Origin: Phaeosaccion multiseriatum
Taxonomy: Eukaryota; Protista; Ochrophyta, other classes
Length of the DNA stretch: 64,000 nucleotides
Assembly (NCBI GenBank): GCA_965112735.1
Contig: OZ218957.1
Coordinates: 1,736,001 to 1,800,000, forward strand
Direction of reading: 5' to 3'
Numbering within the stretch: position 1 is the stretch's first letter; the number at the start of each line of letters is the position of its first letter. Made by a program: the position numbers and the translations under genes. Positions 1-33,794 of this stretch are shown in pieces. Under the pieces are notes generated by a model that worked only from the letters and a program-made list of their open reading frames with translations, had not been told where the DNA came from and searched no databases.

Positions 1-2900
1 TCCTCCTCCTCCTCCTCCTCCTTCCGCGTGCCCTCGCCCTCCTCCTCTGCCCGTGGGGGTGGTGGGTTGGTACGGGTTGAGCCTGGCCGTTGCTGTCGTG
101 TGCTGGGGCGTTGCCGTACGCGACGGGTCCTCGTTTGGGTCTGGGCCTAGATAGGCGTTCTCGAGGTCGTTGAGGGGGCCTTGGTAGGCCGATGCTGCGT
201 TGCCTTGGGTGAGGATGGTCCTGAGGGCGGGGATGGCTCGTTGAGCTTGGTAGCCAGCCATGCAGCCTTGCGCGGGGCAGGGGAGGTTGCCTGGTGGTAT
301 GACGGGCTGCTGGTTGGCTCTCCTCAGTGTGGCTTGGTCGTTCAGGTGGTGAAGGAGGCACGCGGGGTGAACGGTGTGTTGGCAGCGTCGGGTGCGTACT
401 GGCCACTCCGTGGTTGGTGCGATGAAAGGGGGGTCCGCGTCAGACATGCATATGCAGCATATCGGGGCTGGGGGGGCGGTAGGTTGGGGTGGGGGTGTGT
501 GTCGGGTGGTGGGGGGTGGCTGGGACTGGCGGCGCCGTCCTTGGCTGGCCTGCGCGTGCTGCTGATGCGACTCTCTGCGCTCCCTCGCTAGGCGATCCCT
601 TGCGCGGCCCATAGCTCTCCCTCCTTGTGCTGTGATGGCCTGCTCGATCGTGTGCCGGTAGCAGGGGTTGCGGCAGTAGGGGCAGAGGTGGTCGTTGCGG
701 TTGGGGTACGTGCTCATGACTCCCAATGCGCAGTGGTTGTGCACGTGATGTTCGTCTTCGTGCATGGCGACTTGTGCTTGGCCAGTGAGCGGTTCCATAC
801 ACACCGGGCAGTTGGGTAGCTCCTCGTTGTTGGTGGGGTCGCCTCCTCCTTCTGCTTCGTCACCTCCTCCCTCTGCTTGCCCTTCCCCTCCTTCTGCCGC
901 TGCTTCCCGTGCCAGTGCTGGGCGCTCTCCTCCGCCTCTGCTGTTTTCGCCCTCTCCCCCCTGCTACTACTCTTCCGTCGCGGTCTCCTCGTCCCCCTCC
1001 CCTGTGTCCCGCTCGCTCTCCTCTCCCTTCTCCCTCCGGGTCGTGCTCCCGTGTAGTGTCTGTCCCACCTGCTCTTGTCGGTGGGGGCATGCTGCGAGCT
1101 CGTGGTGGGATGGTTGACGATGCCGGGAGGTGTGCTGCTTCGTATGCTCGTATGCATGTGTGGCATATGGGCTGCCGTAGGCCTGCTTGCGGGAAGCTTC
1201 TGAGGAGGGATCTGCCGGAGTTTCTGTGGGCCAGGTTGCCGCATCCACGTATACAGTCACGTAGCTGATACGTTCTGTTCTGTGGTCCGCTCTGTGGGCC
1301 GTTGGCGCGGTACCACAGGATTGACGCGGCCTGGGGGTGGTGTTCGCGCATCCATCGTTCCCACTCTCGGCCGCGGTTGGGGTGGTGGCTCAACTGGTGC
1401 CTGTTGAGGCGGTCTCTGGACCTGCCGACCGTGACGAAGGTGTCATTGCACTGTTCGAAGTTGCAGAGGACTCCCGTGGCGATGTAGTTGTTGTCAATGT
1501 TCCTGCGGTACGCTGTGGTGTTGTTGTGGGTGTCGTCCGTCTGTGGCGTGGTTGTGTCACTGTGGGTGGGGGTGTTGGCGGTCCTGGTGCGGTTCCCCGG
1601 GGGGCCTGCCTCGTGCGTAAGGCGAGGGCTTGCCCCGGCGCCCACCACGGTGTGGCCATGGTGTTGGCGAAGGGGGAGGTGGTGGTGTTGTTGGTGTGGT
1701 CGCGTAGGGCGTGGCCGTAGCGCTCAACGATGGCTTGGACGTCGGGTAATACCGCGATGAGTTCCTCCTGTCGTGAGGCGGTGATGTAGTCGTTGACCAA
1801 CTCGTTGGAGGTGATCTCTTGGCCTGCGAGCGTGTGGGCATAGGCCTCTACGATCTGTTGCCATCCAAGGGGGTAATCTCCTCCCCCATGTGGTCTTCCG
1901 GGGGTGGTGGGGGGGCCTCCGCTCCTTAGAGCTTGTCTGAGGAGGGGCATATAGAAGTGCGAGTTGGTAGGCGGGAGCGCCGCGTCGCGCTGGTGGCGTA
2001 TGGTGTTGCTCCATGTCGTTGGTGCGTGTCCATGCGTGTCTGTTTCGAGTGATGCTGTCTCTTCCTCGTGCGTCGTGGGGGGTGGTCGTACGAGGTCGGC
2101 GATGGCCTCGGCCGTGTTGTGGTGGGTCAGTTCCGTCGCGGTGAGGTTTAGGCTTGCGAACTCAGCGCTGATGCGTCGGCTGGCGGATGCTGGCGCTTGT
2201 TCGTTGAAGAAGAGGTTCGGGTGTTGCCGTATGGGGGTCGTGGCTGTGAGGTGGGTGTCTTCGTATTCGTCTTGGAGGATGGAGACGATTTGCTCTGTGA
2301 TCCCGTGTGCGTTTCTGTGAGTTGACGCGTTGGTGGTTTGGGCTGGATCTGAGGCTCGGAAAGTGGCGGTTGGCCTTTCCGGGCTGCGTGCTCGGGGGGT
2401 CCTGCTTCGTCCCCTTGGCCTCGTGGTTGGCTGCATGGGTGCTGGGCTGGTCGCTGTGGGGGGTGGTGCTGTTGTAGGGCCTGTTGTCTCGCTGGCGGGC
2501 GTGGTAGATCTCCTGGCGGCTGGTGCTGTTTGTTGCCGTGTCGTTGAGATCGGTTGTGGTTGCTGCTGCTGGGGGTGGGCTTCCGCTGCTGTTGCTGTGG
2601 GTTCCGTGAGTGCTGGTGGGAGCTGTGGGTCCTGCGGGAGGGTGTTGCGGGGTGCTGCGGCCGCTGGTGGAGCCGTGATGGGGGTGGGCACGCCTTCCCG
2701 TGCTGGTGTTTGGCGAATTGCTGCTGCCGCTGCCCGTCTCTCCCTTCTTTCGAGCCGCTGCTGATCGCGGCTCATAGGTGGCTCCTGCTGGGTTGCTGTG
2801 AGGTTTGCTGGTGTCTCCTGGGCTCCGGGGGGCCGCGTGGCCCCCCTGTCGTCCCCTTCCATGGTGGCCCTGTCTTAAGCAGAAAAAAAGATGGGGTGTG
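1..2900 (-). mobile_element. CRE-clade non-LTR retrotransposon, copy A (5' ~2.9 kb only; continues beyond the window start)
   Basis: Near-identical to 26499-~29400 of copy C (ORF 1390..2862 is identical to 26537..28009). Its 5' end CACACCCCATCTTTTTTTCTGCTTAAG abuts the 3' end of copy B at 2901-2903. Confidence 0.93.
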
Positions 2901-3224
2901 ATGTATATTAGAGCTTATGGGCTCAGTATTGGAGCGCTCGAGGTAAGTTGTAACCATGTGTAGATGCGTGTATGTGTGGTATTGATGGAGCGTGATGTGG
3001 AGGGGAAGAGGATGGTAAGGGTGGTAGAGTAGAGGATAATGGGGAATGGGAAGGGAGTGAGGGGGGGAGGAGGAGATGAAGGGGGGTGGGAAGGAGTGAG
3101 GTGGTGGAGGTGATATGTGAACTATCCTACTGGGGGTGGTGCGGGTGACAAGGCGTGACTAACTGTGGTTGCTATGCTGTGTGCTGATGGTCTCGCTGTC
3201 TGCTGGCTGGTGTACTCCTGCTCC

Positions 3225-5717
3225 TCAGGCGGCCGCTCCGTCGATGGCTCCCATGAGCCCCCAGTCGAGGGTTTCTGCTGCTTCGTGCTGCGTCATCGTG
3301 GCTCGAAGGAGGGTGCCATACCTGATCTCCCGCTGTGAGAGGGCGCGTTGAAGGGCGAGGGACAGTTGTTGGCGCAGGAGGCCCTTGATGGGGCCCGTGG
3401 CTGCCGCCGCTGCGGGGCCGAGCCCTCTTGATGCCTTGTGGATGGCCATCGCCTCGATGAGCTCGTCCGTTTGGTGGCCCAGTCTGCCGTACGTCTCGAT
3501 TGCAATGCACTTCAGGGTTGAAGTCCCGGGCAGAAAACTGCCCAGGTAGTGAATGCGCTTGCGCTCTTCGGCGGCGGCTGCTGCGTGGCCTGGCGTGGTG
3601 GAGGCCCGTCCCACGTGGGTGGGGGCGGTGGGGTTGGTGACGGTGATGTCGCAGAGGAGGTTTCTCCGCAGGGGTGCGTCCGCTCCCGGGAAGCTACCTG
3701 CGGGATAGGTCAGATCCATGCGTAGGTCTCGGCCTGCTCGGGTGCCCGTGGGGCCGTCGAAGCAGGTCTGGTCCTCTACACGTGCTCCTCCAATGCCCAC
3801 GCTGTGCATCATCCTCCCGAAGGCCTTGACGAGGAGGTGGTGTGTGTGGTTGTGGAGGCCGGTGCGGGGGCAGATGGTGGCGTGGGTGGTGCTTGCCGTG
3901 CGGGCGCAGCCTGTGCCGAGGCAGGGTGGGGGCGGGTCCGCGTATGGCGTGTTGACACCGAGGTTGCGACGAAGGGCCATGGTCCATTCTGCGGGGGCCA
4001 TGGTGTTGTGGCCGTGGGGGAGCGCTCCGAGGAAGGCCATGGCGCCCCTTCCTCGCTGTGAGTGGAGTCGGGCTGTTGCCATTTCCTGTGTCTCCTCTCC
4101 CCTCTGTGCCTCTGCCGGTGTGACGTCGATGGTGGCGATGCTCTGCGTCAGCTCCTCATGGCGGCGTTTGTGGATGAAGGTGGTGAGGGCCTTCTGGACG
4201 CCGTGGGTCGGTTGACGGCCTGCCTGATGGCTCCTGCGCACGTTGCGTCGCGCTGTGTCTTGGGCTTGGTGGTCAGGCGGCTCGAGTACGCGTGAGCGGG
4301 CCTCGTCGAACTGTGCCTGACCCACTGCTTGGATGAGGGGGGCCTCAGGGACCCCCTCCTCGTGCAGGAGGTTGACGCTGTCGGCGACGCTCTTGAGGGC
4401 TCCGTTGGTGAACAGCTGGTCCGGTAGGGCGCTCTCTTGGGAGCCTTCCCGGCGTGCGGTGCGGCTGAGCAGGGGGGGGAGGGTGAGCATCTTGTTGCCA
4501 AGGTATGCTGCTGGGGCGATGTCGTGGAGGCTGGTGAGGCCGAGGCCGCCGAAGCGCCGTGCCGTATGCATTTGTAGGCGCTGTGTCTCCGTCCATGGCT
4601 CCTCTTGTGCATCTGCGGCCTGCTCCAGAGGGGGGGCATCGGGGAGTCGCATGATGTGGGCCAGTGTCGCCCTGTTGGTGCGGTCTGCCCTGCTGCCGAG
4701 GGCGCGTCGGAAGATGGAGGGGTCAATGGCTCTCGCCAGGTGTGTGAGCCTGGCTGGGAGGCATTGGAGGAGGACGAGGGTGGCCGCCTGGGTGTTGTCC
4801 CACTCGCTGCAGTGTTTGGCGAGTTGGAGGTAGCCCCTGGGGTCTTCTTGGCCGAGGATGTTGCGGAGGTACTCTTCGATGTACTCCTCTGTGCCGACGG
4901 GGATGCCGGCTACCACGGTACCCTCGGTGGCAAGTGTGGCGCCCTGCCGTTGGGCGTGGTCCCTGTCAGCCTGTGTTGGCTGCTTGCCTTTGCCCATGAG
5001 GTAAACCGTTTTCCTCTCGTTGAACTCGAGGCCCAAGCCTCGGAATTGGGCTTGGAGATGGGCATGGCGTGGGGCGTAGGTCTCTAGGGGTGCGTCGGGT
5101 TCCAGCTGGTCCATGAGGTCGTCTGCGTAGGCGGAGATGGTGGGGCGGTTCGCTGCGGTGTCGGCTGTGTTCTGAACTTTCAGCACTGGGTGGATGGCGG
5201 CTGCGAACATGAGAGGCCCTTCTGGTGCTCCTTGGTTGACTCCGGAGCTCTGGTGGATGGTCTGGGTGCCGTCTGGTGTGAGGGCGTTGTGGGCGGAGGC
5301 GTGGGAGAGGCTGGCGATGGCGTAGTTGATGCCTGCTGGGTCGATGGTAGGGAGTGCGCCTGAGGCTAGGACGCCTCTGGCACGCGACACGCGGGTGTAG
5401 GCCTTGGTGATGTCATGCAGCACGACGGTTTTGCCGGCATCGTGCGCTAGCTGGGCTGCTGCGGCGTGTGTTTCCCCTCCGCCTCTGACCGCTACCGCTA
5501 GCTGTCCTGCGCTTCTGAGCTCTGGGCCCACCCTGTCCGCGATGAGCTTCATGTGACAGCTCTCCACGAGGCTGCGGTAGAGGTTGGGGGATGTCACAGG
5601 ACGCGCTTTCTCGCCGAGGGCTGCGGCGCTGGTGCTGAACCACCGTTTGGCGAGCTGTGGAGGCAGTGGAGTGTCCCCCGTTCGGAGCAGCTCGTAGGTG
5701 TCAGTCAGAGCCTCCAC
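3225..5717 (-). CDS. Reverse transcriptase + CCHC knuckle + restriction-like endonuclease (C-terminal part of copy B protein)
   Basis: RT motifs LHDITKAY, GVNQGAPEGPLMF, AYADDL, GLEFNERKT, AGIPVG, RFGGLGL; knuckle CLGTGC-x7-H-x3-C; RLE motifs HNHTHH..E..RMDL..LLCDITVTNP..AEERKRIHY..IAIETYG, as in CRE-clade elements. Confidence 0.93.
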   Translation of the reverse strand: MEALTDTYELLRTGDTPLPPQLAKRWFSTSAAALGEKARPVTSPNLYRSLVESCHMKLIADRVGPELRSAGQLAVAVRGGGETHAAAAQLAHDAGKTVVLHDITKAYTRVSRARGVLASGALPTIDPAGINYAIASLSHASAHNALTPDGTQTIHQSSGVNQGAPEGPLMFAAAIHPVLKVQNTADTAANRPTISAYADDLMDQLEPDAPLETYAPRHAHLQAQFRGLGLEFNERKTVYLMGKGKQPTQADRDHAQRQGATLATEGTVVAGIPVGTEEYIEEYLRNILGQEDPRGYLQLAKHCSEWDNTQAATLVLLQCLPARLTHLARAIDPSIFRRALGSRADRTNRATLAHIMRLPDAPPLEQAADAQEEPWTETQRLQMHTARRFGGLGLTSLHDIAPAAYLGNKMLTLPPLLSRTARREGSQESALPDQLFTNGALKSVADSVNLLHEEGVPEAPLIQAVGQAQFDEARSRVLEPPDHQAQDTARRNVRRSHQAGRQPTHGVQKALTTFIHKRRHEELTQSIATIDVTPAEAQRGEETQEMATARLHSQRGRGAMAFLGALPHGHNTMAPAEWTMALRRNLGVNTPYADPPPPCLGTGCARTASTTHATICPRTGLHNHTHHLLVKAFGRMMHSVGIGGARVEDQTCFDGPTGTRAGRDLRMDLTYPAGSFPGADAPLRRNLLCDITVTNPTAPTHVGRASTTPGHAAAAAEERKRIHYLGSFLPGTSTLKCIAIETYGRLGHQTDELIEAMAIHKASRGLGPAAAAATGPIKGLLRQQLSLALQRALSQREIRYGTLLRATMTQHEAAETLDWGLMGAIDGAAA

Positions 5718-8700
5718 GATTGCGTACTCCTGGGGGCTGTCCGGGGGTACTTGACGTGGCTCGCCCTGCGCCCGTCTGCTCCTTGGCCCTTCCAGTAGTT
5801 GACCCTCCGGTAGGTCAGCAGCATGGCTGTGCTGATCTCCTCTCTGGTGACGTCGTTGCCATTCTCGGGGTGCTCCTGCACCTGGGTTCTGGCGTACTCC
5901 CTGGCTGCTGTTGCTGCTGTGTTGATCTCTTCGAGGCTCTCGTCGACGTGCGCTTGCTGGAGGCGTCGAAAGGTCTCGTGTGTGGGAGGGAGGTGGCCGT
6001 CTCTGCTCTTTGTGCTGAGCCTCGCCGCGGCCTTGTGCAGGCCTCCGGGTTTGGTGAGCAGGTGGGCGCAGGTTTCTCTCCGTCGCTCCTCTGTCTGTGC
6101 CTGTGCTGGGGGTGGTGGGCGGCGTGCGTGTGCTGTGGCTATCGCTGCTTGTGCGAGTGGGGCGATGTCGAGGTCGAGGACCATCTGTATCCGCTGCTGG
6201 CGGCTGTAGGCTCCGTCTTTAGAGAAGAGCATGGCAGGGAGGAGGTGGTGGAAGACATCCCATGCCAGAAGGGTGTGGAGGGTGGCGTCGGTGGGTCCGT
6301 TCTTGTGGGCCCTCAGCGCCCTGTTCCAGTTGTTGAGCGCTCTTTGCTGTAAGCTGATAATCAAGCTTACGTGGCGGGGGTTGCACTGCGCTACTGTCTC
6401 AAACACGAGTGTTGAGAGGATGGTACCCTGCGGGTCCAGGGCCCCTAGGCGGAGGACGTTTGGGTGCTGCATGGGCCATCCTTCCTCGGGTGTATCGTCG
6501 TTGGCTGGCCCTTCTCCGTCCCCTCCGTCCCCGCCGCTACCTCCTTGGCCTCTGCTCCGTCCTCCTCCCCCTCGTCTCGCTGCTGCTGCTGTGGTTCCTT
6601 GCGTGCGTGTGCTATCTCCCCCTGCCCTTTCTCTCTGAGGTCCCCTCTCTGCTGCTGCTCCTTGTCCGTTTCCTTCCCCCCTCCCTCGTCCTCCTCTTCC
6701 TCCTTCTACTCCACTTGGCGCTGCTGCGATTGCTCCTCCTCCTCCTCCTCCTCCTCCTTCCGCGTGCCCTCGCCCTCCTCCTCTGCCCGTGGGGGTGGTG
6801 GGTTGGTACGGGTTGAGCCTGGCCGTTGCTGTCGTGTGCTGGGGCGTTGCCGTACGCGACGGGTCCTCGTTTGGGTCTGGGCCTAGATAGGCGTTCTCGA
6901 GGTCGTTGAGGGGGCCTTGGTAGGCCGATGCTGCGTTGCCTTGGGTGAGGATGGTCCTGAGGGCGGGGATGGCTCGTTGAGCTTGGTAGCCAGCCATGCA
7001 GCCTTGCGCGGGGCAGGGGAGGTTGCCTGGTGGTATGACGGGCTGCTGGTTGGCTCTCCTCAGTGTGGCTTGGTCGTTCAGGTGGTGAAGGAGGCACGCG
7101 GGGTGAACGGTGTGTTGGCAGCGTCGGGTGCGTACTGGCCACTCCGTGGTTGGTGCGATGAAAGGGGGGTCCGCGTCTGACATGCATATGCAGCATATCG
7201 GGGCTGGGGGGGCGGTAGGTTGGGGTGGGGGTGTGTGTCGGGTGGTGGGGGGTGGCTGGGACTGGCGGCGTCGCCCTTGGCTGGCCTGCGCGTGCTGCTG
7301 ATGCGACTCTCTGCGCTCCCTCGCTAGGCGATCCCTTGCGCGGCCCATAGCTCTCCCTCCTTGTGCTGTGATGGCCTGCTCGATCGTGTGCCGGTAGCAG
7401 GGGTTGCGGCAGTAGGGGCAGAGGTGGTCGTTGCGGTTGGGGTACCTGCTCATGACTCCCAATGCGCAGTGGTTGTGCACGTGATGTTCGTCTTCGTGCA
7501 TGGCGACTTGTGCTTGGCCAGTGAGCGGTTCCATACACACCGGGCAGTTGGGTAGCTCCTCGTTGTTGGTGGGGTCGCCTCCTCCTTCTCCTTCGTCACC
7601 TCCTCCCGCTGCTTGCCCTTCCCCTCCTTCTGCCGCTGCTTCCCGTGCCAGTGCTGGGCGCTCTCCTCCGCCTCTGCTGTTTTCGCCCTCTTCCCCCCCT
7701 GCTACTACTCTTCCTTCGCGGTCTCCTCGTCCCCCTCCCCTGTGTCCCGCTCGCTCTCCTCTCCCTCCTCCCTCCTGGTCGTGCTCTCGTGTAGTGTCTG
7801 TCCCACCTGCTCTTGTCGGTGGGGGCATGCTTCGAGCTCGTTGGATGGTTGGCGGTGCTGGTAGGCTTGCGGCTTCGTGTGCTCGTATGCAGGCGTTGCA
7901 TAGGGGTTGTCGTAGGCCTGATTGCGGGAAGCGGGTAAGGAAGGATCTGCCGGAGTTTCGGTGGGCCAGGTTGCCGCATCCACTTGTGCAGTCCCGGAGC
8001 TGGTACGTATTATTCTGTGGTCCGCTCTGTGGGCCGTTGGCGCGGTACCACAGGATTGACGCGGCCTGGGGGTGGTGTTCGCGCATCCATCGGTCCCACT
8101 CTCTGCCGCGGTTCGGGTGGTGGCTCGACTGGTGCCTGATGAGGCGGTCTCTTGTATTGCCTACCGTGACGAAAGTGTCGTGGCATTCGCCAAAGTTGCA
8201 GAGGATGCCCCCTTGAATGTTTCCATTGTCGGGGTGTCTTCGGTACACTCGGGCGTTGTTGGGGTTGTCCTCCGGTGTTGGTGGGCTGGGTGTGGTTGCG
8301 TCGCTTTGGGCGGGGGGTGGTGGCGGTCCTGGTGCGGTTCCCCGGGGGGCCTGTCTCGTGCGTAGGGCGAGGGCTTGCCCCGGCGCCCACCACGGTGTGG
8401 CCATGGTGTTGGCGAAGGGGGAGGTGGTGGTGTTGTTGGTGTGGTCGCGTAGGGCGTGGCCGTAGCGCTCAACGATGGCTTGGACGTCGGGTAATACCGC
8501 GATGAGTTCCTCCTGTCGTGAGGCGGTGATGTAGTCGTTGACCAACTCGTTGGAGGTGATCTCTTGGCCTGCGAGCGTGTGGGCATAAGCCTCTACGATC
8601 TGTTGCCATCCAAGGGGGTAATCTCCTCCCCCATGTGGTCTTCCGGGGGTGGTGGGGGGGCCTCCGCTCCTTAGAGCTTGTCTGAGGAGGGGCATGTAGA

Positions 8701-9607
8701 AGTGGGAGTTGGTAGGCGGGAGCGCCGCGTCGCGCTGGTGGCGTATGGTGTTGCTCCATGTCGTTGGTGCGTGTCCATGCGTGTCTGTTTCAAGTGATGC
8801 TGTCTCTTCCTCTTGTGTCGTGGGGGGTGGTCGTACGAGGTCGGCGATGGCCTCGGCCGTGTTGTGGTGGGTCAGTTCCGTCGCGGTGAGGTTTAGGCTT
8901 GCGAACTCAGCGCTGATGCGTCGGCTGGCGGATGCTGGCGCTTGTTCGTTGAAGAAGAGGTTCGGGTGTTGCCGTATGGGGGTCGTGGCTGTGAGGTGGA
9001 TGTCTTCGTATTCGTCTTGGAGGATGGAGACGATTTGCTCTGTGATCCCGTGTGCGTTTCTGTGAGTTGACGCGTTGGTGGTTTGGGCTGGATCTGAGGC
9101 TCGGAAATTGGCGGTTGGCCTTTCCTGGCGGCGTGCTCGGGGGGTCCTGCTTCGTCCCCTTGGCCTCGTGGTTGGCTGCATGGGTGCTGGGCTGGTCGCT
9201 GTGGGGGGTGGTGCTGTTGTAGGGTCTGTTGTCTCGCTGGCGGGCGTGGTAGATCTCCTGGCGGCTGGTGCTGTTTGTTGCCGTGTCGTTTAGATCGGTT
9301 GTGGTTGCTGCTGCTGGGGGTGGGCTTCCGCTGCTGTTGCTGTGGGTTCCGTCAGTGCTGGTGGGAGCCGTGGGTCCTGCGGGAGGGTGTTGCGGGGTGC
9401 TGCGGCCGCTGGTGGAGCCGTGATGGGGGTGGGCACGCCTTCCCGTGCTAGGGTTTGGCGATTTGCTGCTGCCGCTGCCCGTCTCTCCCTTCTTTCGAGC
9501 CGCTGCTGATCGCGGCTCATAGGTGGCTCCTGCTGGGTTGCTGTTGGGTTTGCTGGTGTCTCCTGGGCTCCGGGGGGCCGCGTGGCCCCCCTGTCGTCCC
9601 CTTCCAT
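5705..9607 (-). CDS. N-terminal part of copy B protein (ACP-like segment, C2H2 finger, A20-like C4 finger, two RING-like fingers, start of RT); interrupted by a stop at 9290
   Basis: ORFs 9290..9607 and 5705..9181 are in the same frame; ATG lies in GCCACCATGG context. Motifs: CNFGEC-x16-H-x3-H; CPVC..HxHxxC..CPYC; CICM..CQHTVHPAC..CPAQGC. It ends with the RT domain-0-like KGQGADGRRASHVK, so it is probably one ORF with 3225..5717 (one extra C needed near 5731-5747). Confidence 0.8.
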
Positions 9608-9643
9608 GGTGGCCCTGTCCTAAGCAGAAAAAAAGAAGGGGTG

Positions 9644-10967
9644 GGGTGTGAGAAGCAGTCGCAGCAGGGAGGATTATGCCAGAGGCACGGAGCTGTGAGC
9701 ATACGTAAGAGGTGCACTGTGGAGGGGTGTGAGAACCAGTCGCAGCAGGGAGGATTGTGCACTAGGCATGGAGCTGTGATCAAGAGGTGTAGTGTGGAGG
9801 GGTGTGAGAAGCAGACCCAGGGTGGATGTGGTGGGATGTGTAGGCGTCATGCTCGAATGAAAAGGGAGGGAGCGGAGCAGACGGAGATGGCCCAGGGCAC
9901 GCCTGAACCCAAGCGAGGAGCTGCCACCGACATCGATACGAGAGGAAGGAAGAGGGCGAAGTTCCCCCCTTCAGTTGAGGGAGGGGAGAGGCAAGAGGAA
10001 GAGAAGGAAGCAGCGGAGGAGGATGGGGATGGAGGAGGTTTGCTTGCGAGGCTGGGGCTTCATGTCGGGGATGAGATTCAGCTTCCCAATGGTCTGTGGA
10101 GAGAGCTGGAAGATGCTGCTGCCGACGCTGCCATAGCCTGCTGGGGCCACCGGGATAGGCAGCTGTCGAATGGCGTGGTGGTGTCTGTGGGCCAGAGTAA
10201 GGTGTTGCTGCTGCCCCACTACGCTGTGCGCACCAAGAGAAAGGGGACCAGCCTGGAGAGCACGATTCGAGGCTTTGTGTCTGCCTACCAGCGCTATCGC
10301 TCAGGAGGAGGAGGGGGTGACGAGGATGACGAGAAGCAGCAGGACGAGTGGGAGGTGCTGGAGGAGGGCATGGTGGTGGCGAGTGAGAAGAAGAGGCGGG
10401 GACGGAAGGCGCTGCGAGCGTGCGTGCGTGTGGGGCGCGTGGCAGGGGCTTGTGCTGGTGCTGATACCTCGGGACTGGGGATGTAGTGACGCGAAGCCGT
10501 CCATCTCATCTCCTGCCTATCTTCGCCACGGTGAAGCTTGGCTTGCACCATCGTACCATGGTGGGTGGGTGGGCGGGTGGGCGGGTGGGTGTGGATGGGT
10601 GGATAGGTGGGTGGGTGGGTGGGCGGGTGTGTGTGGGTGGGTCGGGGGGGGGGCTTGTTGCGATATAGTCTTCACGCCTTGCCACTGCCACGATGGATGC
10701 TGGGAGTGTTTTGCTCTCGGCTTGCCGTCACCCGTACACACGGACTCGTGTGAAGCAGCTGCGCCCTGTCGCCCTTACGCCGGGCCCTCGCTGCTGCCCT
10801 GCTCTGCTCTGCTCTGCTGCTGTTGCCCTCTGGATGTATTCATGTGTGTTGTTTTGGCTGTGCAGGGAGGCGGCGGGAGCACGGAAGGCATGAGCAGGGT
10901 CAAAGCTACCGACGAGGACGCGCCTTTCCTCGTGGCCAAGTCTCTCAAGCTTGCCGATTTGATTTGA
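9644..10967 (+). pseudogene. 3' part of WRKY19-like zinc-finger repeat gene, paralogue L, interrupted by retrotransposons A/B
   Basis: GCEKQSQQGGLCQRHG / CTVEGCENQSQQGGLCTRHG / CSVEGCEKQTQGGCGGMCRRH repeats, a basic NLS-like RGRKRAK, and further putative exons conserved with paralogue R, ending ...KLADLI* at 10965-10967. It lacks a ~150-bp block present in R. Confidence 0.7.
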
Positions 10968-25055: not shown

Positions 25056-26498
25056 TCAAATCAAATCGGCGAGCTTGAGAGACTTGGCCACGAGGAAAGG
25101 CCCCTCCTCGTCGGTAGCTTTGACCCGGCTCATGCCTTCCGTGCTCCCGCCGCCTCCCTGCACAGCCAACACAACACACATGAATACATCCAGAGGGCAA
25201 CAGCAGCAGAGCAGAGCAGCAGCGAGGGCCCGGCGTAAGAGCGACAGGGCGCAACTGCTTCACACGAGTCCGTGTGTACGGGTCACGTCAAGCACGGGGC
25301 AGAGATGTGAAAGAAGTCGTACTTTTGCTATACTGATACCTATCCCCTGAACTCAGACCCCGCTAGGGAATTCACAGGATAGGCACCAGTCTATCAAAAG
25401 TACGAGTTCTACCAAGAACACTCCCAGCATCCATCGTGGTAGTGGCAAGGCGTGAAAGTCACTCACCCCATTACCCTCCTCCCTGTTGGCTTATTCCAAC
25501 CCACAACCCCTTGGACAAGACTCGCAGACGCTTCCACCCCTCTCTCTCCTCGTCGATGCTCTCGGTCTTCCGCTGTCTCCTGCCCCAAGCCTCCGACCTC
25601 CAACACCCCCTAGCCCCCCCCCGACCCACCCACACCCACCCACTCATCCACCCACCCACCATGGTACGATGGTGCAAGCCAAGCTTCACCGCGGCGAAGA
25701 TAGGCAGGAGATGAGGCGGACGGCTTCGCGTCACTACATCCCCAGTCCCGAGGTATCAGCACCAGCACAAGCCCCTGCCACGCCCCCCACACGCACGCAC
25801 GCTCGCAGCGCCTTCCGTCCCCGCCTCTTCTTCTCACTCGCCACCACCATGCCCTCCTCCAGCACCTCCCACTCGTCCTGCTGCTTCTCGTCATCCTCGT
25901 CACCCCCTCCTCCTCCTGAGCGATAGCGCTCGTAGGCAGACACAAAGCCTCGAATCGTGCTCTCCAGGCTGGTCCCCTTCCTCTTGGTGCGCACAGCGTA
26001 GTGGGGCAGCAGCAACACCTTACTCTGGCCCACAGACACCACCACGCCATTCGACAGCTCCCTATCCCGGTGGCCCCAGCAGGCTATGGCAGCGTCGGCA
26101 GCAGCATCTTCCAGCTCTCTCCACAGACCATTGGGAAGCTGAATCTCATCCCCGGCATGAAGCCCCAGCCTCGCAAGCAAACCTACTCCATCCCCATCCT
26201 GCTCCGCTGCTTCCTTCTCTTCTTGCTGCCTCTCCCCTCCCTCAACTGAAGGGGGGAACTTCGCCCTCTTCCTTCCTCTCGTATCGATATCGGTGGCAGC
26301 TCCTCGCTTGGGTTTAGGCGTGCCCTGGGTTATCTTCCCCGTCTGCTCCGCTCCCTCCCTTTTCATTCGAGCATGGCGTTTACACATCCCACCACATCCA
26401 CCCTGGGCTTGCTTCTCACACCCCTCCACAGTACACATCTTGACCACAGCTCCATGCCTAATGCATAATCCTCCCTGCTGTGACAGCTTCTCACACCC
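25056..26498 (-). CDS. 3' part of WRKY19-like zinc-finger repeat gene, paralogue R (continues at 33227-33448 beyond retrotransposon C)
   Basis: GCEKLSQQGGLCIRHG / CTVEGCEKQAQGGCGGMCKRH; highly similar in inverted orientation to 9644-10972; stop ...ADLI* at 25056-25058. Confidence 0.72.
25312..25410. mobile_element. ~100-bp hairpin / MITE-like insertion in an intron of paralogue R
   Basis: Imperfect 40-bp inverted arms at 25312-25351 and 25371-25410; absent from the homologous position of paralogue L. Confidence 0.6.
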
Positions 26499-29400
26499 CA
26501 CACCCCATCTTTTTTTCTGCTTAAGACAGGGCCACCATGGAAGGGGACGACAGGGGGGCCACGCGGCCCCCCGGAGCCCAGGAGACACCAGCAAACCTCA
26601 CAGCAACCCAGCAGGAGCCACCTATGAGCCGCGATCAGCAGCGGCTCGAAAGAAGGGAGAGACGGGCAGCGGCAGCAGCAATTCGCCAAACACCAGCACG
26701 GGAAGGCGTGCCCACCCCCATCACGGCTCCACCAGCGGCCGCAGCACCCCGCAACACCCTCCCGCAGGACCCACAGCTCCCACCAGCACTCACGGAACCC
26801 ACAGCAACAGCAGCGGAAGCCCACCCCCAGCAGCAGCAACCACAACCGATCTCAACGACACGGCAACAAACAGCACCAGCCGCCAGGAGATCTACCACGC
26901 CCGCCAGCGAGACAACAGGCCCTACAACAGCACCACCCCCCACAGCGACCAGCCCAGCACCCATGCAGCCAACCACGAGGCCAAGGGGACGAAGCAGGAC
27001 CCCCCGAGCACGCAGCCCGGAAAGGCCAACCGCCACTTTCCGAGCCTCAGATCCAGCCCAAACCACCAACGCGTCAACTCACAGAAACGCACACGGGATC
27101 ACAGAGCAAATCGTCTCCATCCTCCAAGACGAATACGAAGACACCCACCTCACAGCCACGACCCCCATACGGCAACACCCGAACCTCTTCTTCAACGAAC
27201 AAGCGCCAGCATCCGCCAGCCGACGCATCAGCGCTGAGTTCGCAAGCCTAAACCTCACCGCGACGGAACTGACCCACCACAACACGGCCGAGGCCATCGC
27301 CGACCTCGTACGACCACCCCCCACGACGCACGAGGAAGAGACAGCATCACTCGAAACAGACACGCATGGACACGCACCAACGACATGGAGCAACACCATA
27401 CGCCACCAGCGCGACGCGGCGCTCCCGCCTACCAACTCGCACTTCTATATGCCCCTCCTCAGACAAGCTCTAAGGAGCGGAGGCCCCCCCACCACCCCCG
27501 GAAGACCACATGGGGGAGGAGATTACCCCCTTGGATGGCAACAGATCGTAGAGGCCTATGCCCACACGCTCGCAGGCCAAGAGATCACCTCCAACGAGTT
27601 GGTCAACGACTACATCACCGCCTCACGACAGGAGGAACTCATCGCGGTATTACCCGACGTCCAAGCCATCGTTGAGCGCTACGGCCACGCCCTACGCGAC
27701 CACACCAACAACACCACCACCTCCCCCTTCGCCAACACCATGGCCACACCGTGGTGGGCGCCGGGGCAAGCCCTCGCCTTACGCACGAGGCAGGCCCCCC
27801 GGGGAACCGCACCAGGACCGCCAACACCCCCACCCACAGTGACACAACCACGCCACAGACGGACGACACCCACAACAACACCACAGCGTACCGCAGGAAC
27901 ATTGACAACAACTACATCGCCACGGGAGTCCTCTGCAACTTCGAACAGTGCAATGACACCTTCGTCACGGTCGGCAGGTCCAGAGACCGCCTCAACAGGC
28001 ACCAGTTGAGCCACCACCCCAACCGCGGCCGAGAGTGGGAACGATGGATGCGCGAACACCACCCCCAGGCCGCGTCAATCCTGTGGTACCGCGCCAACGG
28101 CCCACAGAGCGGACCACAGAACAGAACGTATCAGCTACGTGACTGTATACGTGGATGCGGCAACCTGGCCCACAGAAACTCCGGCAGATCCCTCCTCAGA
28201 AGCTTCCCGCAAGCAGGCCTACGGCAGCCCATATGCCACACATGCATACGAGCATACGAAGCAGCACACCTCCCGGCATCGTCAACCATCCCACCACGAG
28301 CTCGCAGCATGCCCCCACCGACAAGAGCAGGTGGGACAGACACTACACGGGAGCACGACCCGGAGGGAGAAGGGAGAGGAGAGCGAGCGGGACACAGGGG
28401 AGGGGGACGAGGAGACCGCGACGGAAGAGTAGTAGCAGGGGGGGAGAGGGCGAAAACAGCAGAGGCGGAGGAGAGCGCCCAGCACTGGCACGGGAAGCAG
28501 CGGCAGAAGGAGGGGAAGGGCAAGCAGAGGGAGGAGGTGACGAAGCAGAAGGAGGAGGCGACCCCACCAACAACGAGGAGCTACCCAACTGCCCGGTGTG
28601 TATGGAACCGCTCACTGGCCAAGCACAAGTCGCCATGCACGAAGACGAACATCACGTGCACAACCACTGCGCATTGGGAGTCATGAGCACGTACCCCAAC
28701 CGCAACGACCACCTCTGCCCCTACTGCCGCAACCCCTGCTACCGGCACACGATCGAGCAGGCCATCACAGCACAAGGAGGGAGAGCTATGGGCCGCGCAA
28801 GGGATCGCCTAGCGAGGGAGCGCAGAGAGTCGCATCAGCAGCACGCGCAGGCCAGCCAAGGACGGCGCCGCCAGTCCCAGCCACCCCCCACCACCCGACA
28901 CACACCCCCACCCCAACCTACCGCCCCCCCAGCCCCGATATGCTGCATATGCATGTCTGACGCGGACCCCCTTTCATCGCACCAACCACGGAGTGGCCAG
29001 TACGCACCCGACGCTGCCAACACACCGTTCACCCCGCGTGCCTCCTTCACCACCTGAACGACCAAGCCACACTGAGGAGAGCCAACCAGCAGCCCGTCAT
29101 ACCACCAGGCAACCTCCCCTGCCCCGCGCAAGGCTGCATGGCTGGCTACCAAGCTCAACGAGCCATCCCCGCCCTCAGGACCATCCTCACCCAAGGCAAC
29201 GCAGCATCGGCCTACCAAGGCCCCCTCAACGACCTCGAGAACGCCTATCTAGGCCCAGACCCAAACGAGGACCCGTCGCGTACGGCAACGCCCCAGCACA
29301 CGACAGCAACGGCCAGGCTCAACCCGTACCAACCCACCACCCCCACGGGCAGAGGAGGAGGGCGAGGGCACGCGGAAGGAGGAGGAGGAGGAGGAGGAGC

Positions 29401-32400
29401 AATCGCAGCAGCGCCAAGTGGAGTAGAAGGACGAAGAGGAGGACGAGGGAGGGGGAAGGAAACGGACAAGGAGCAGCAGCAGAGAGGGGACCTCAGAGAG
29501 AAAGGGCAGGGGGAGATAGCACACGCACGCAAGGAACCACAGCAGCAGCAGCGAGACGAGGGGGAGGAGGACGGAGCAGAGGCCAAGGAGGTAGCGGCGG
29601 GGACGGAGGGGACGGAGAAGGGCCAGCCAACGACGATACACCCGAGGAAGGATGGCCCATGCAGCACCCAAACGTCCTCCGCCTAGGGGCCCTGGACCCG
29701 CAGGGTACCATCCTCTCAACACTCGTGTTTGAGACAGTAGCGCAGTGCAACCCCCGCCACGTAAGCTTGATTATCAGCTTACAGCAAAGAGCGCTCAACA
29801 ACTGGAACAGGGCGCTGAGGGCCCACAAGAACGGACCCACCGACGCCACCCTCCACACCCTTCTGGCATGGGATGTCTTCCACCACCTCCTCCCTGCCAT
29901 GCTCTTCTCTAAAGACGGAGCCTACAGCCGCCAGCAGCGGATACAGATGGTCCTCGACCTCGACATCGCCCCACTCGCACAAGCAGCGATAGCCACAGCA
30001 CACGCACGCCGCCCACCACCCCCAGCACAGGCACAGACAGAGGAGCGACGGAGAGAAACCTGCGCCCACCTGCTCACCAAACCCGGAGGCCTGCACAAGG
30101 CCGCGGCGAGGCTCAGCACAAAGAGCAGAGACGGCCACCTCCCTCCCACACACGAGACCTTTCGACGCCTCCAGCAAGCGCACGTCGACGAGAGCCTCGA
30201 AGAGATCAACACAGCAGCAACAGCAGCCAGGGAGTACGCCAGAACCCAGGTGCAGGAGCACCCCGAGAATGGCAACGACGTCACCAGAGAGGAGATCAGC
30301 ACAGCCATGCTGCTGACCTACCGGAGGGTCAACTACTGGAAGGGCCAAGGAGCAGACGGGCGCAGGGCGAGCCACGTCAAGTACCCCCGGACAGCCCCCA
30401 GGAGTACGCAATCGTGGAGGCTCTGACTGACACCTACGAGCTGCTCCGAACGGGGGACACTCCACTGCCTCCACAGCTCGCCAAACGGTGGTTCAGCACC
30501 AGCGCCGCAGCCCTCGGCGAGAAAGCGCGTCCTGTGACATCCCCCAACCTCTACCGCAGCCTCGTGGAGAGCTGTCACATGAAGCTCATCGCGGACAGGG
30601 TGGGCCCAGAGCTCAGAAGCGCAGGACAGCTAGCGGTAGCGGTCAGAGGCGGAGGGGAAACACACGCCGCAGCAGCCCAGCTAGCGCACGATGCCGGCAA
30701 AACCGTCGTGCTGCATGACATCACCAAGGCCTACACCCGCGTGTCGCGTGCCAGAGGCGTCCTAGCCTCAGGCGCACTCCCTACCATCGACCCAGCAGGC
30801 ATCAACTACGCCATCGCCAGCCTCTCCCACGCCTCCGCCCACAACGCCCTCACACCAGACGGCACCCAGACCATCCACCAGAGCTCCGGAGTCAACCAAG
30901 GAGCACCAGAAGGGCCTCTCATGTTCGCAGCCGCCATCCACCCAGTGCTGAAAGTTCAGAACACAGCCGACACCGCAGCGAACCGCCCCACCATCTCCGC
31001 CTACGCAGACGACCTCATGGACCAGCTGGAACCCGACGCACCCCTAGAGACCTACGCCCCACGCCATGCCCATCTCCAAGCCCAATTCCGAGGCTTGGGC
31101 CTCGAGTTCAACGAGAGGAAAACGGTTTACCTCATGGGCAAAGGCAAGCAGCCAACACAGGCTGACAGGGACCACGCCCAACGGCAGGGCGCCACACTTG
31201 CCACCGAGGGTACCGTGGTAGCCGGCATCCCCGTCGGCACGGAGGAGTACATCGAAGAGTACCTCCGCAACATCCTCGGCCAAGAAGACCCCAGGGGCTA
31301 CCTCCAACTCGCCAAACACTGCAGCGAGTGGGACAACACCCAGGCGGCCACCCTCGTCCTCCTCCAATGCCTCCCAGCCAGGCTCACACACCTGGCGAGA
31401 GCCATTGACCCCTCCATCTTCCGACGCGCCCTCGGCAGCAGGGCAGACCGCACCAACAGGGCGACACTGGCCCACATCATGCGCCTCCCCGATGCCCCCC
31501 TCTGGAGCAGGCCGCAGATGCACAAGAGGAGCCATGGACGGAGACACAGCGCCTACAAATGCATACGGCACGGCGCTTCGGCGGCCTCGGCCTCACCAGC
31601 CTCCACGACATCGCCCCAGCAGCATACCTTGGCAACAAGATGCTCACCCTCCCCCCCCTGCTCAGCCGCACCGCACGCCGGGACGGCTCCCAAGAGAGCG
31701 CCCTACCGGACCAGCTGTTCACCAACGGAGCCCTCAAGAGCGTCGCCGACAGCGTCAACCTCCTGCACGAGGAGGGGGTCCCTGAGGCCCCCCTCATCCA
31801 AGCAGTGGGTCAGGCACAGTTCGACGAGGCCCGCTCACGCGTACTCGAGCCGCCTGACCACCAAGCCCAAGACACAGCGCGACGCAACGTGCGCAGGAGC
31901 CATCAGGCAGGCCGTCAACCGACCCACGGCGTCCAGAAGGCCCTCACCACCTTCATCCACAAACGCCGCCATGAGGAGCTGACGCAGAGCATCGCCACCA
32001 TCGACGTCACACCGGCAGAGGCACAGAGGGGAGAGGAGACACAGGAAATTGCAACAGCCCGACTCCACTCACAGCGAGGAAGGGGCGCCATGGCCTTCCT
32101 CGGAGCGCTCCCCCACGGCCACAACACCATGGCCCCCGCAGAATGGACCATGGCCCTTCGTCGCAACCTCGGTGTCAACACGCCATACGCGGACCCGCCC
32201 CCACCCTGCCTTGGCACAGGCTGCGCCCGCACGGCAAGCACCACCCACGCCACCATCTGCCCCCGCACCGGCCTCCACAACCACACGCACCACCTCCTCG
32301 TCAAGGCCTTCGGGAGGATGATGCACAGCGTGGGCATTGGAGGAGCACGTGTAGAGGACCAGACCTGCTTCGACGGCCCCACGGGCACCCGAGCAGGACG

Positions 32401-33226
32401 AGACCTACGCATGGACCTGACCTATCCCGCAGGTAGCTTCCCGGGAGCGGACGCACCCCTGCGGAGAAACCTCCTCTGCGACATCACCGTCACCAACCCC
32501 ACCGCCCCCACCCACGTGGGACGGGCCTCCACCACGCCAGGCCACGCAGCAGCCGCCGCCGAAGAACGCAAGCGCACACACTACCTGGGCAGTTTTCTGC
32601 CCGGGACTTCAACCCTGAAGTGCATTGCAATTGAGACGTACGGCAGACTGGGCCACCAAACGGACGAGCTCATCGAGGCGATGGCCATCCACAAGGCATC
32701 AAGAGGGCTCGGCCCCGCAGCGGCGGCAGCCACGGGCCCCATCAAGGGCCTCCTGCGCCAACAACTGTCCCTCGCCCTTCAACGCGCCCTCTCACAGCGG
32801 GAGATCAGGTATGGCACCCTCCTTCGAGCCACGATGACGCAGCACGAAGCAGCAGAAACCCTCGACTGGGGGCTCATGGGAGCCATCGACGGAGCGGCCG
32901 CCTGAGGAGCAGGAGTACACCAGCCAGCAGACAGCGAGACCATCAGCACACAGCATAGCAACCACAGTTAGTCACGCCTTGTCACCCGCACCACCCACAG
33001 CAGGATAGTTCACCTATCACCTCCACCACCTCACTCCTTCCCACACCCCTTCATCTCCTCCTCCCCCCTTCACTCCCTTCCCATTCCCCATTATCCTCTA
33101 CTCTACCACCCTTACCATCCTCTTCTCCTCCACATCACGCTCCATCAATACCACACATACACACATCTACACATGGTTACAACTTACCTCGAGCGCTCCA
33201 ATACTGAGCCCATAAGCTCTAATATA
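26499..33226 (+). mobile_element. CRE-clade non-LTR retrotransposon, copy C (full length 6728 bp) with 12-bp TSD
   Basis: Flanked by CTTCTCACACCC at 26487-26498 and 33227-33238; 38-nt 5' UTR, ATG at 26537, stop at 32905, ~320-nt 3' UTR ending CTCTAATATA with no poly(A). Confidence 0.95.
26537..32905 (+). CDS. Copy C polyprotein (~2100 aa reconstructed: zinc fingers/RINGs-RT-CCHC-RLE), broken by several 1-nt indels in homopolymers
   Basis: ORF fragments 26537..28009, 27751..28686, 28155..29057, 29138..29686, 28993..30426, 30414..31982 and 31559..32905 tile the same protein as copy B. Breaks fall in or next to C/G runs (~27830, ~28440, ~28970, ~29452, ~30386, ~31497). Confidence 0.85.
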
Positions 33227-33448
33227 CTTCTCACACCCTTCCACAGTACACGTCTTTCTCACAGCTCCATGCCTAGTGCACAATCCTCCTTGGACCCGCT
33301 GATTCTCACACCCCTCCACATTACACCTCTTCCGCATTCTCGCAGCTCCGTGGCTACTGCACAATCCTCCCTGCTGCGAATGCTTCTCACACCCCTCCCC
33401 AGTCCACGATTTTTGGATCCCGGCTGCGAGGCAGGGGGTCTTCTCCTC
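33227..33448 (-). CDS. 5' zinc-finger exon of paralogue R, upstream of the insertion
   Basis: KSWTGEGCEKHSQQGGLCSSHG-AARMRKR-CNVEGCENQRVQGGLCTRHG-AVRKT-CTVEGCEK. Removing the element and one TSD restores CTVEGCEKLSQQGGLCIRHG. True start not identified. Confidence 0.8.
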
Positions 33449-33794
33449 TGAAAGTTCTTCAACAGATCAACGGGATAAGATATCAGGGTATGATGATAGG
33501 AACCTCAGCTCTGAGTGGCTCCTCCCTCACGTTCTTTCCCGCGGATCGCTGTGGAGAGATTGTCTTCTACTTCCCCCCCCGAGCCTTCAAAACAAAACAA
33601 ATTCGCCTCAGGAGATGAGGGTCTCACGCCCATCCACCGCACACCAGTCTTGAGTGGCTCTTCCCTCTCGTCTCCTCCCGCAAGTTGCTGAAAGACAAGT
33701 CCTTGCGCAGAGTATTGCGTGTGAAAGGGGAAAGTGTGAAAGGAGAGAAAAAGGGGGGGGTGGGGGGCGTCTGGTGCCATCTGTGCTGGCCAAA

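Follow-up and report, generated by a model that had tools for sequence, protein, structure and literature searches.

The stretch analysed here (the window, 64,000 nucleotides) covers positions 1,736,001 to 1,800,000 of the forward strand of contig OZ218957.1 of the ochrophyte Phaeosaccion multiseriatum (assembly GCA_965112735.1). It contains one copy (copy A) of a retrotransposon of approximately 6.74 kb, which lies antisense within a zinc-finger coding sequence, and an inverted head-to-tail array of the same element at 1-9653, which includes a second, full-length copy (copy B). On the host strand, the two ends of the element carry motifs that resemble a 5' and a 3' splice site, and full-length copies may be removed from the host pre-mRNA as a spliceosomal intron (Table 1).

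The element encodes a protein with zinc-finger and RING-like motifs in its N-terminal part, a reverse transcriptase (RT), a CCHC knuckle and a putative restriction-like endonuclease (RLE). Copies elsewhere in the genome keep this frame open over as many as 2172 codons, and intact copies therefore have a single open reading frame (ORF) of approximately 2170 codons. Compared with copy B, copy A has lost a single nucleotide at each of five positions (near 27826, 28444, 28966, 29450 and 31494), which breaks its ORF, and copy A is thus non-functional as assembled. Substitutions between copies A and B are concentrated at 27750-28300, and contigs of two public sequencing runs contain small indels relative to the left copy at window positions 955, 1567 and 5742, the last of which adjoins the overlap of ORF1 and ORF2. 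The 830-aa part of the protein matches Pfam RVT_1 (E = 2.8e-07, 30.9 bits against a cut-off of 29.6), RT motifs including YADD are visible by inspection, and there is a weak match to R2 structures. By inspection, the RT is followed by the knuckle C-x3-C-x8-H-x3-C and by RMDLTY ... CDITVTNP ... KRIHY, which resembles the D...D...K arrangement of RLEs; no Pfam or PDB match was obtained for this RLE part. A HMMER search of 1.8 billion proteins for relatives of the element protein yielded 26 library proteins at E <= 1e-30, the best of which align from the RT through the endonuclease region. The nearest relatives share 30-34% identity across RT and RLE, and all are unnamed metagenomic or genomic ORFs. 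Word-based protein searches with the RT part and with the C-terminal part of the host protein gave no match. Judged by the RT, the CCHC motif and RLE that follow it, the combination of 5' truncation and target-site duplications (TSDs) without terminal repeats, and insertion that is sequence-specific and in a single orientation, the element is a young, site-specific RLE-type non-LTR retrotransposon (LTR, long terminal repeat). The genome also contains a second RLE family (e.g. C1:4578500-4588499), which shows 34% identity in the endonuclease part and has a 1668-aa ORF. The 3' end of its copies is fixed (...TTAAGTCAATAAAGT) and has a (CA)n tract close by, and the family is not site-specific, since the flanks of its copies are unrelated to one another.

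Both parts of the gene interrupted by copy A match Pfam Zf_WRKY19. The upstream part (open from 33466) lacks an ATG, and an acceptor-like ...CTTTCAG stands before it, so that a further upstream host exon is likely. The C-terminal domain of the downstream part has no Pfam match and is found at least 124 times in the genome, mostly with open frames, in tandem clusters on contigs C8, C1, C13 and C2, within which family members are spaced 2-10 kb apart. Given this number of matches, the target is a large, redundant gene family, and the disruption of single members may cost the host little. Insertions are found in the EGCEK-coding motif of this Zf_WRKY19-type family, always with the element antisense to the gene. 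A GTGAGATG-like target word precedes all 3' junctions printed (30 loci), each of which continues with the identical 39 nt and donor motif. The upstream flanks at these loci are mostly zinc-finger coding sequence in the host sense, the remainder being tandem element sequence or other DNA. Two host members in the window are arranged head to head (9885-10602 and 25618-26335, 96% identity) and each contains an insertion at the same motif, with differing 5' junctions.

A census of element ends identified 95 donor-bearing 3' ends in the genome at up to two mismatches, a number that rose to 120 when a looser probe was used. Acceptor-bearing 5' ends numbered 30, and every copy with a 5' end possesses the acceptor. 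About three quarters of the copies are therefore 5'-truncated and hence without the acceptor. The 3' part of the element has a 3-4 times higher depth in contigs from four public runs, and loose ends in public-run contigs join truncation points to GCGACAAG-type host sequence. TSDs are 6-13 bp in length. The 5' junctions are heterogeneous, consisting of A7 to A12, then GA(T/A)G, then variable target-like bases and the TSD, and lengths of 60, 63 or 62 nt were found for the head-to-tail junctions. The 5' extension GAAGGGGGGTGCTAG is common to four copies (C12:3038268, C1:770366, C1:673556 and C1:613143) whose flanks are very dissimilar, and this 5' end appears to have been inherited by a subfamily; such inherited, target-derived terminal bases seem to imply a transcription start upstream of the T-run. 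At the opposite end, GAGATG|TATATT is the sequence of most copies, with GAGATG in place of the host motif GAGAAG (found in copy A); an in-frame ATG thus stands immediately ahead of the 39 nt. CAT, and perhaps target-like bases as well, seem to form part of the element at its very 3' end.

Use of both candidate splice sites of copy A, each of which is in phase 0, would remove an intron of 6671 nt and leave an insert of 69 nt in frame, with a spliced junction in which ...GCGCTCGAG is joined to AAAAAAAGA.... This prediction had been made in the first-pass annotation, and its motifs and coordinates (33187 and 26517), intron length, insert length and phase were all confirmed from the sequence, together with its caveat that copy B has 16 nt before GGGTGTGAGAAG and is out of frame. 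The motifs also face the host gene in all junctions printed. The 6.75-kb element contains a single GTAAGT on its host-sense strand, at the position predicted, and none on the other strand, and a single AGGTAAGT was counted in the non-element sequence of the window (91 kb over both strands). The donor exceeds chance expectation; the acceptor, a pyrimidine-rich tract with CAG, and the 19 stop-free codons are unremarkable on their own. On the sense strand, ACTTACCT was considered as the relic of a U1 small nuclear RNA (snRNA) gene target and dropped, since its flanking bases bear no apparent resemblance to those of U1.

Table 1. Features of copy A, the array containing copy B and the interrupted host gene, in window coordinates (UTR, untranslated region).
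Feature	Position	Strand	Remarks
Retrotransposon copy A	26499..33226	+	Sense on +, antisense to host gene; ORF split among several frames
Single ORF of the element, span in copy A	26537..32905	+	From ATG in GCCACCATGG context to stop
Element 3' UTR, 321 nt	32906..33226	+	Final 39 nt are the candidate exonised part
Copy B, full-length, inside head-to-tail array	2893..9653	-	ORFs of 1158 and 830 aa; acceptor at 9627; 5' junction out of frame
Tandem junction of two copies	2884..2943	+	Order: acceptor, 60 nt, donor
Downstream TSD copy GGGTGTGAGAAG (GCEK; GGG TGT GAG AAG)	26487..26498	-	
Upstream TSD copy GGGTGTGAGAAG (GCEK; GGG TGT GAG AAG)	33227..33238	-	
Host open frame upstream of insertion	33227..33466	-	Zf_WRKY19-type fingers, no ATG
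Host open frame downstream of insertion	25734..26486	-	Fingers and family C-terminal domain to stop
39 nt in host frame (YIRAYGLSIGALE), no stop	33188..33226	-	Directly after GGG TGT GAG AAG
Candidate 5' splice site GAG|GTAAGT, intron from 33187	33182..33190	-	GTGAGT in older lineages
Candidate 3' splice site CCCTGTCTTAAGCAG|, intron end 26517	26517..26531	-	Antisense of element 5' UTR and Kozak region
18 nt of element 5' end (A7 GATGGGGTGTG; KKRWGV), left in mRNA if spliced	26499..26516	-	Length and sequence vary among copies

Older copies at 71-92% identity retain GAG|GTAAGT or have GAG|GTGAGT, the latter in lineages at 71-88% identity; AAG|GTAAGT is found in one, and in one dead copy the site is gone. 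When position +3 of the donor was left free in the probe, it proved to be A or G in all 100 copies listed. The acceptor is kept in the single older 5' end available. The two splice-like motifs are thus family-wide in this genome, with the donor in about 120 copies, the acceptor in all 30 5' ends and GTRAGT in the older lineages.

Sequence variation in the 39 nt resembles that of coding sequence read in the host frame. Among 49 distinct sequences, variable sites fall on codon positions 1, 2 and 3 in the ratio 4/1/9 (P = 0.017, binomial), or 4/1/10 (P = 0.0085, binomial) if one extra copy with a third-position change of GGG to GGA is included. Nine of the 10 third-position changes are synonymous, and one creates TAG. 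As a control, the 3' UTR beyond the donor (282 nt) shows a flat distribution (38/49/44), and the sense ORF, which served as positive control, gives 83/89/188. A third-position pattern that stops at the donor, in this case built on few sites and recognised post hoc, is the signature of an exon-intron boundary.

The first-pass annotation had also proposed that the element neutralises exonic insertions by leaving the host frame intact. The frame after removal was determined from the offset between the acceptor and the first host GGLC or HGA motif in the 24 5' junctions that run into host fingers. Frames 0, 1 and 2 are represented by 6, 13 and 5 junctions, respectively, with 8 in frame 0 predicted by chance; one of the six frame-0 junctions passes a stop, and the GAAGGGGGGTGCTAG subfamily, an active one, is always in frame 1 and meets an early stop. 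This random frame results from the imprecise joining of the 5' junction. The element is therefore no device for preserving the frame, copy A came out in frame by an accident with odds of one in three, and in-frame neutralisation has to be abandoned as a property of the family.

Traces of spliced molecules were sought in three kinds of data. A search for public runs covering the stretch returned four, from one sample and none recorded as RNA, and these were compared with positions 1-6000 of the window, a region chosen because the tandem junction places acceptor and donor 60 nt apart, so that a spliced molecule would appear as a go-back joint. These runs are DNA-like, with contigs of up to 254 kb and a depth that tracks copy number, and the sole go-back joint listed is the junction of a truncated copy (3483 to 2896). 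The predicted spliced junction had no match in JGI metagenome contigs, a search that is uninformative since the unspliced element, used as control, likewise had none. A spliced scar was sought in the genome and none was found.

We propose that the target of the element's endonuclease is the EGCEK-coding sequence within the repeated Zf_WRKY19-type fingers of this tandem family. Insertion would proceed by target-primed reverse transcription, with the element invariably antisense to the gene, short TSDs and frequent 5' truncation, and occasional re-entry into a regenerated target would produce the head-to-tail arrays. On the host strand, the 3' end of the element supplies the 39-nt open stretch and a consensus 5' splice site motif, and its 5' end the pyrimidine tract and CAG. 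Full-length copies would be cut from the host pre-mRNA as a 6.7-kb intron, and truncated copies could not be removed in this way. That the donor of this site-specific RLE element is a real splice site, and that full-length copies are spliced out with the host frame left to chance, is the explanation we tentatively place first, at somewhat less than an even chance. For the narrower statement that the element ends may function as splice sites, the odds are near even, because the donor is conserved and the variation is codon-like. A more far-reaching version, in which an autonomous site-specific RLE element would have evolved host-strand splice sites together with a translated, 13-codon terminal mini-exon, and the spliceosome would remove its full-length insertions, appears rather unlikely.

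A real possibility, if one that falls short of even, is that the splice-like motifs are incidental. The last 75 nt of the element would then be kept for RT binding and the first 50 nt as 5' UTR, Kozak sequence and start codon, and the element would merely disrupt members of a redundant family, as do other site-specific elements whose targets are multicopy, with nothing being spliced. Several observations weigh against splicing. The terminal 75 nt are conserved as a whole, as expected for a 3' end recognised by the RT, which makes the conservation of the donor inseparable from this constraint, and the conserved block reaches past the donor, where GTAACCATG is equally invariant. The acceptor lies antisense to the 5' UTR, the Kozak sequence (GCCACCATGG), the start codon and the purine-rich first codons of the ORF, all of which are conserved for reasons of their own. 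The codon pattern rests on 14-15 sites and was noticed before being tested. The common donor-like hexamer in this DNA is apparently GTGAGT rather than GTAAGT (192 against 16 occurrences on both strands of the non-element window, approximately 12-fold, partly via (GTGA)n arrays). In the DNA-like runs, no donor-to-acceptor joint was present at the tandem junction among the joints and best-supported loose ends listed. Three contigs of relatives at 30-34% identity, the ends of which are not defined, contain neither an antisense donor nor a zinc-finger flank, and no antisense donor was found near the 3' end of the second RLE family in the genome. Furthermore, in-frame junctions are not in excess and truncated copies without an acceptor form the majority, so that host-level selection for clean removal is not visible. 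The random frame, the size of the target family and the apparent tolerance of the 75% of copies that are truncated likewise agree with an element that is simply disruptive. Against incidental motifs, however, speaks a perfect 9-nt donor that is unique in 6.75 kb and stands 39 nt from the end of the element on the strand that is always host-sense. Moreover, lineages differ in the core GT...AGT hexamer solely by A or G at +3, where the consensus permits either base, and the third-position, mostly synonymous variation in the host frame ends at the donor.

Codon-like variation in the 39 nt would also be expected if an antisense transcript began within the 3' end of the element, with the ATG before TATATT, the 39 nt and the donor forming a first coding exon that is either spliced to the 5'-end acceptor and into the downstream host part or ends inside the element. 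The GAGATG|TATATT junction of most copies, which provides the ATG in frame, is compatible with such a transcript, but copy A has AAG in place of ATG, the frame into the host part is random and no antisense ORF stands out in the element, and we consider this origin improbable. The exon-like look of the segment could alternatively be a relic, or be upheld by gene conversion, if the 39 nt and donor were a captured exon-intron boundary of a host gene. This is very improbable, given that no source gene was found, that the variation arose among element lineages after any such capture, and that the segment is needed at the extreme 3' end, where reverse transcription starts.

The principle of transposable elements that are spliced out is not new. 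In maize Ds and dSpm and in Caenorhabditis elegans Tc1, terminal or cryptic splice sites partly rescue the interrupted gene, often leaving a few extra codons; these are DNA transposons without target specificity, and their removal was shown by cDNA. Introners are transposable elements that create spliceosomal introns upon insertion, and they include non-LTR and LTR retrotransposons, some of them autonomous (Gozashti et al. 2025, PMC12130899; review PMC11282704). The element described here resembles introners, at the level of sequence, in that it carries or co-opts splice sites (GAG|GTRAGT and YAG| inside its ends) by which an exonic insertion would be removable from the mRNA. In contrast, the definition of introners starts from annotated spliced introns that lie in many unrelated genes, and most introners are short and non-autonomous, whereas this element is 6.7 kb long and autonomous, inserts into one motif of one family, is always antisense and leaves a random frame, and its splicing is predicted. 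Its insertions are limited to members of the zinc-finger family, further copies of the element itself and, in a few cases, flanks of neither kind, and a usable host frame after removal is not a general outcome.

Site-specific RLE elements such as R2, CRE/SLACS/CZAR, NeSL and Utopia target rRNA, spliced-leader and snRNA genes and microsatellites (PMC4640811). The present element shares with them a single ORF with N-terminal zinc fingers and an RT followed by CCHC motif and RLE, a single site and orientation of insertion in a multicopy target, precise 3' and variable 5' junctions, and 5' truncation. It differs in that its target is a coding repeat of a protein-coding family and in its antisense orientation to the target gene, which does not allow co-transcription with that gene; its nearest proteins, moreover, are the unnamed ones described above. 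Homing endonucleases have been contrasted with site-specific RLE elements as less harmful, since they are spliced out (PMC4640811). Like homing endonuclease genes in self-splicing introns or inteins, the element would be a site-specific selfish element whose cost is reduced by removal from the host gene product; unlike them, it would require the spliceosome and motifs on its antisense strand in place of self-splicing in sense orientation, and it would restore the frame unreliably. Group II introns, too, are site-specific selfish elements that self-splice in sense orientation. The first-pass annotation knew of no intron mimicry in CRE/RLE elements; as a concept it is not new, since intron-forming retrotransposons, non-LTR and autonomous ones included, are published (PMC12130899). 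A limited literature search found no target-specific non-LTR element described as bearing splice sites on the host strand, or as inserting into a protein-coding repeat.

The survival of site-specific retrotransposons has been put down to their hiding in redundant, non-coding multicopy targets, and their cost to the host is regarded as higher than that of homing endonucleases, which are spliced out (PMC4640811). If the motifs are incidental, the case is one for caution, because a single in-frame copy says little where 5' junctions are imprecise. If the element is indeed spliced out, it would tie an RLE group to the introner route of intron gain, with an autonomous 6.7-kb element acting as an intron. 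Under the more far-reaching version given above, it would be the spliceosomal equivalent of a self-splicing intron with its homing endonuclease, and would be the first of its kind among target-specific non-LTR elements.

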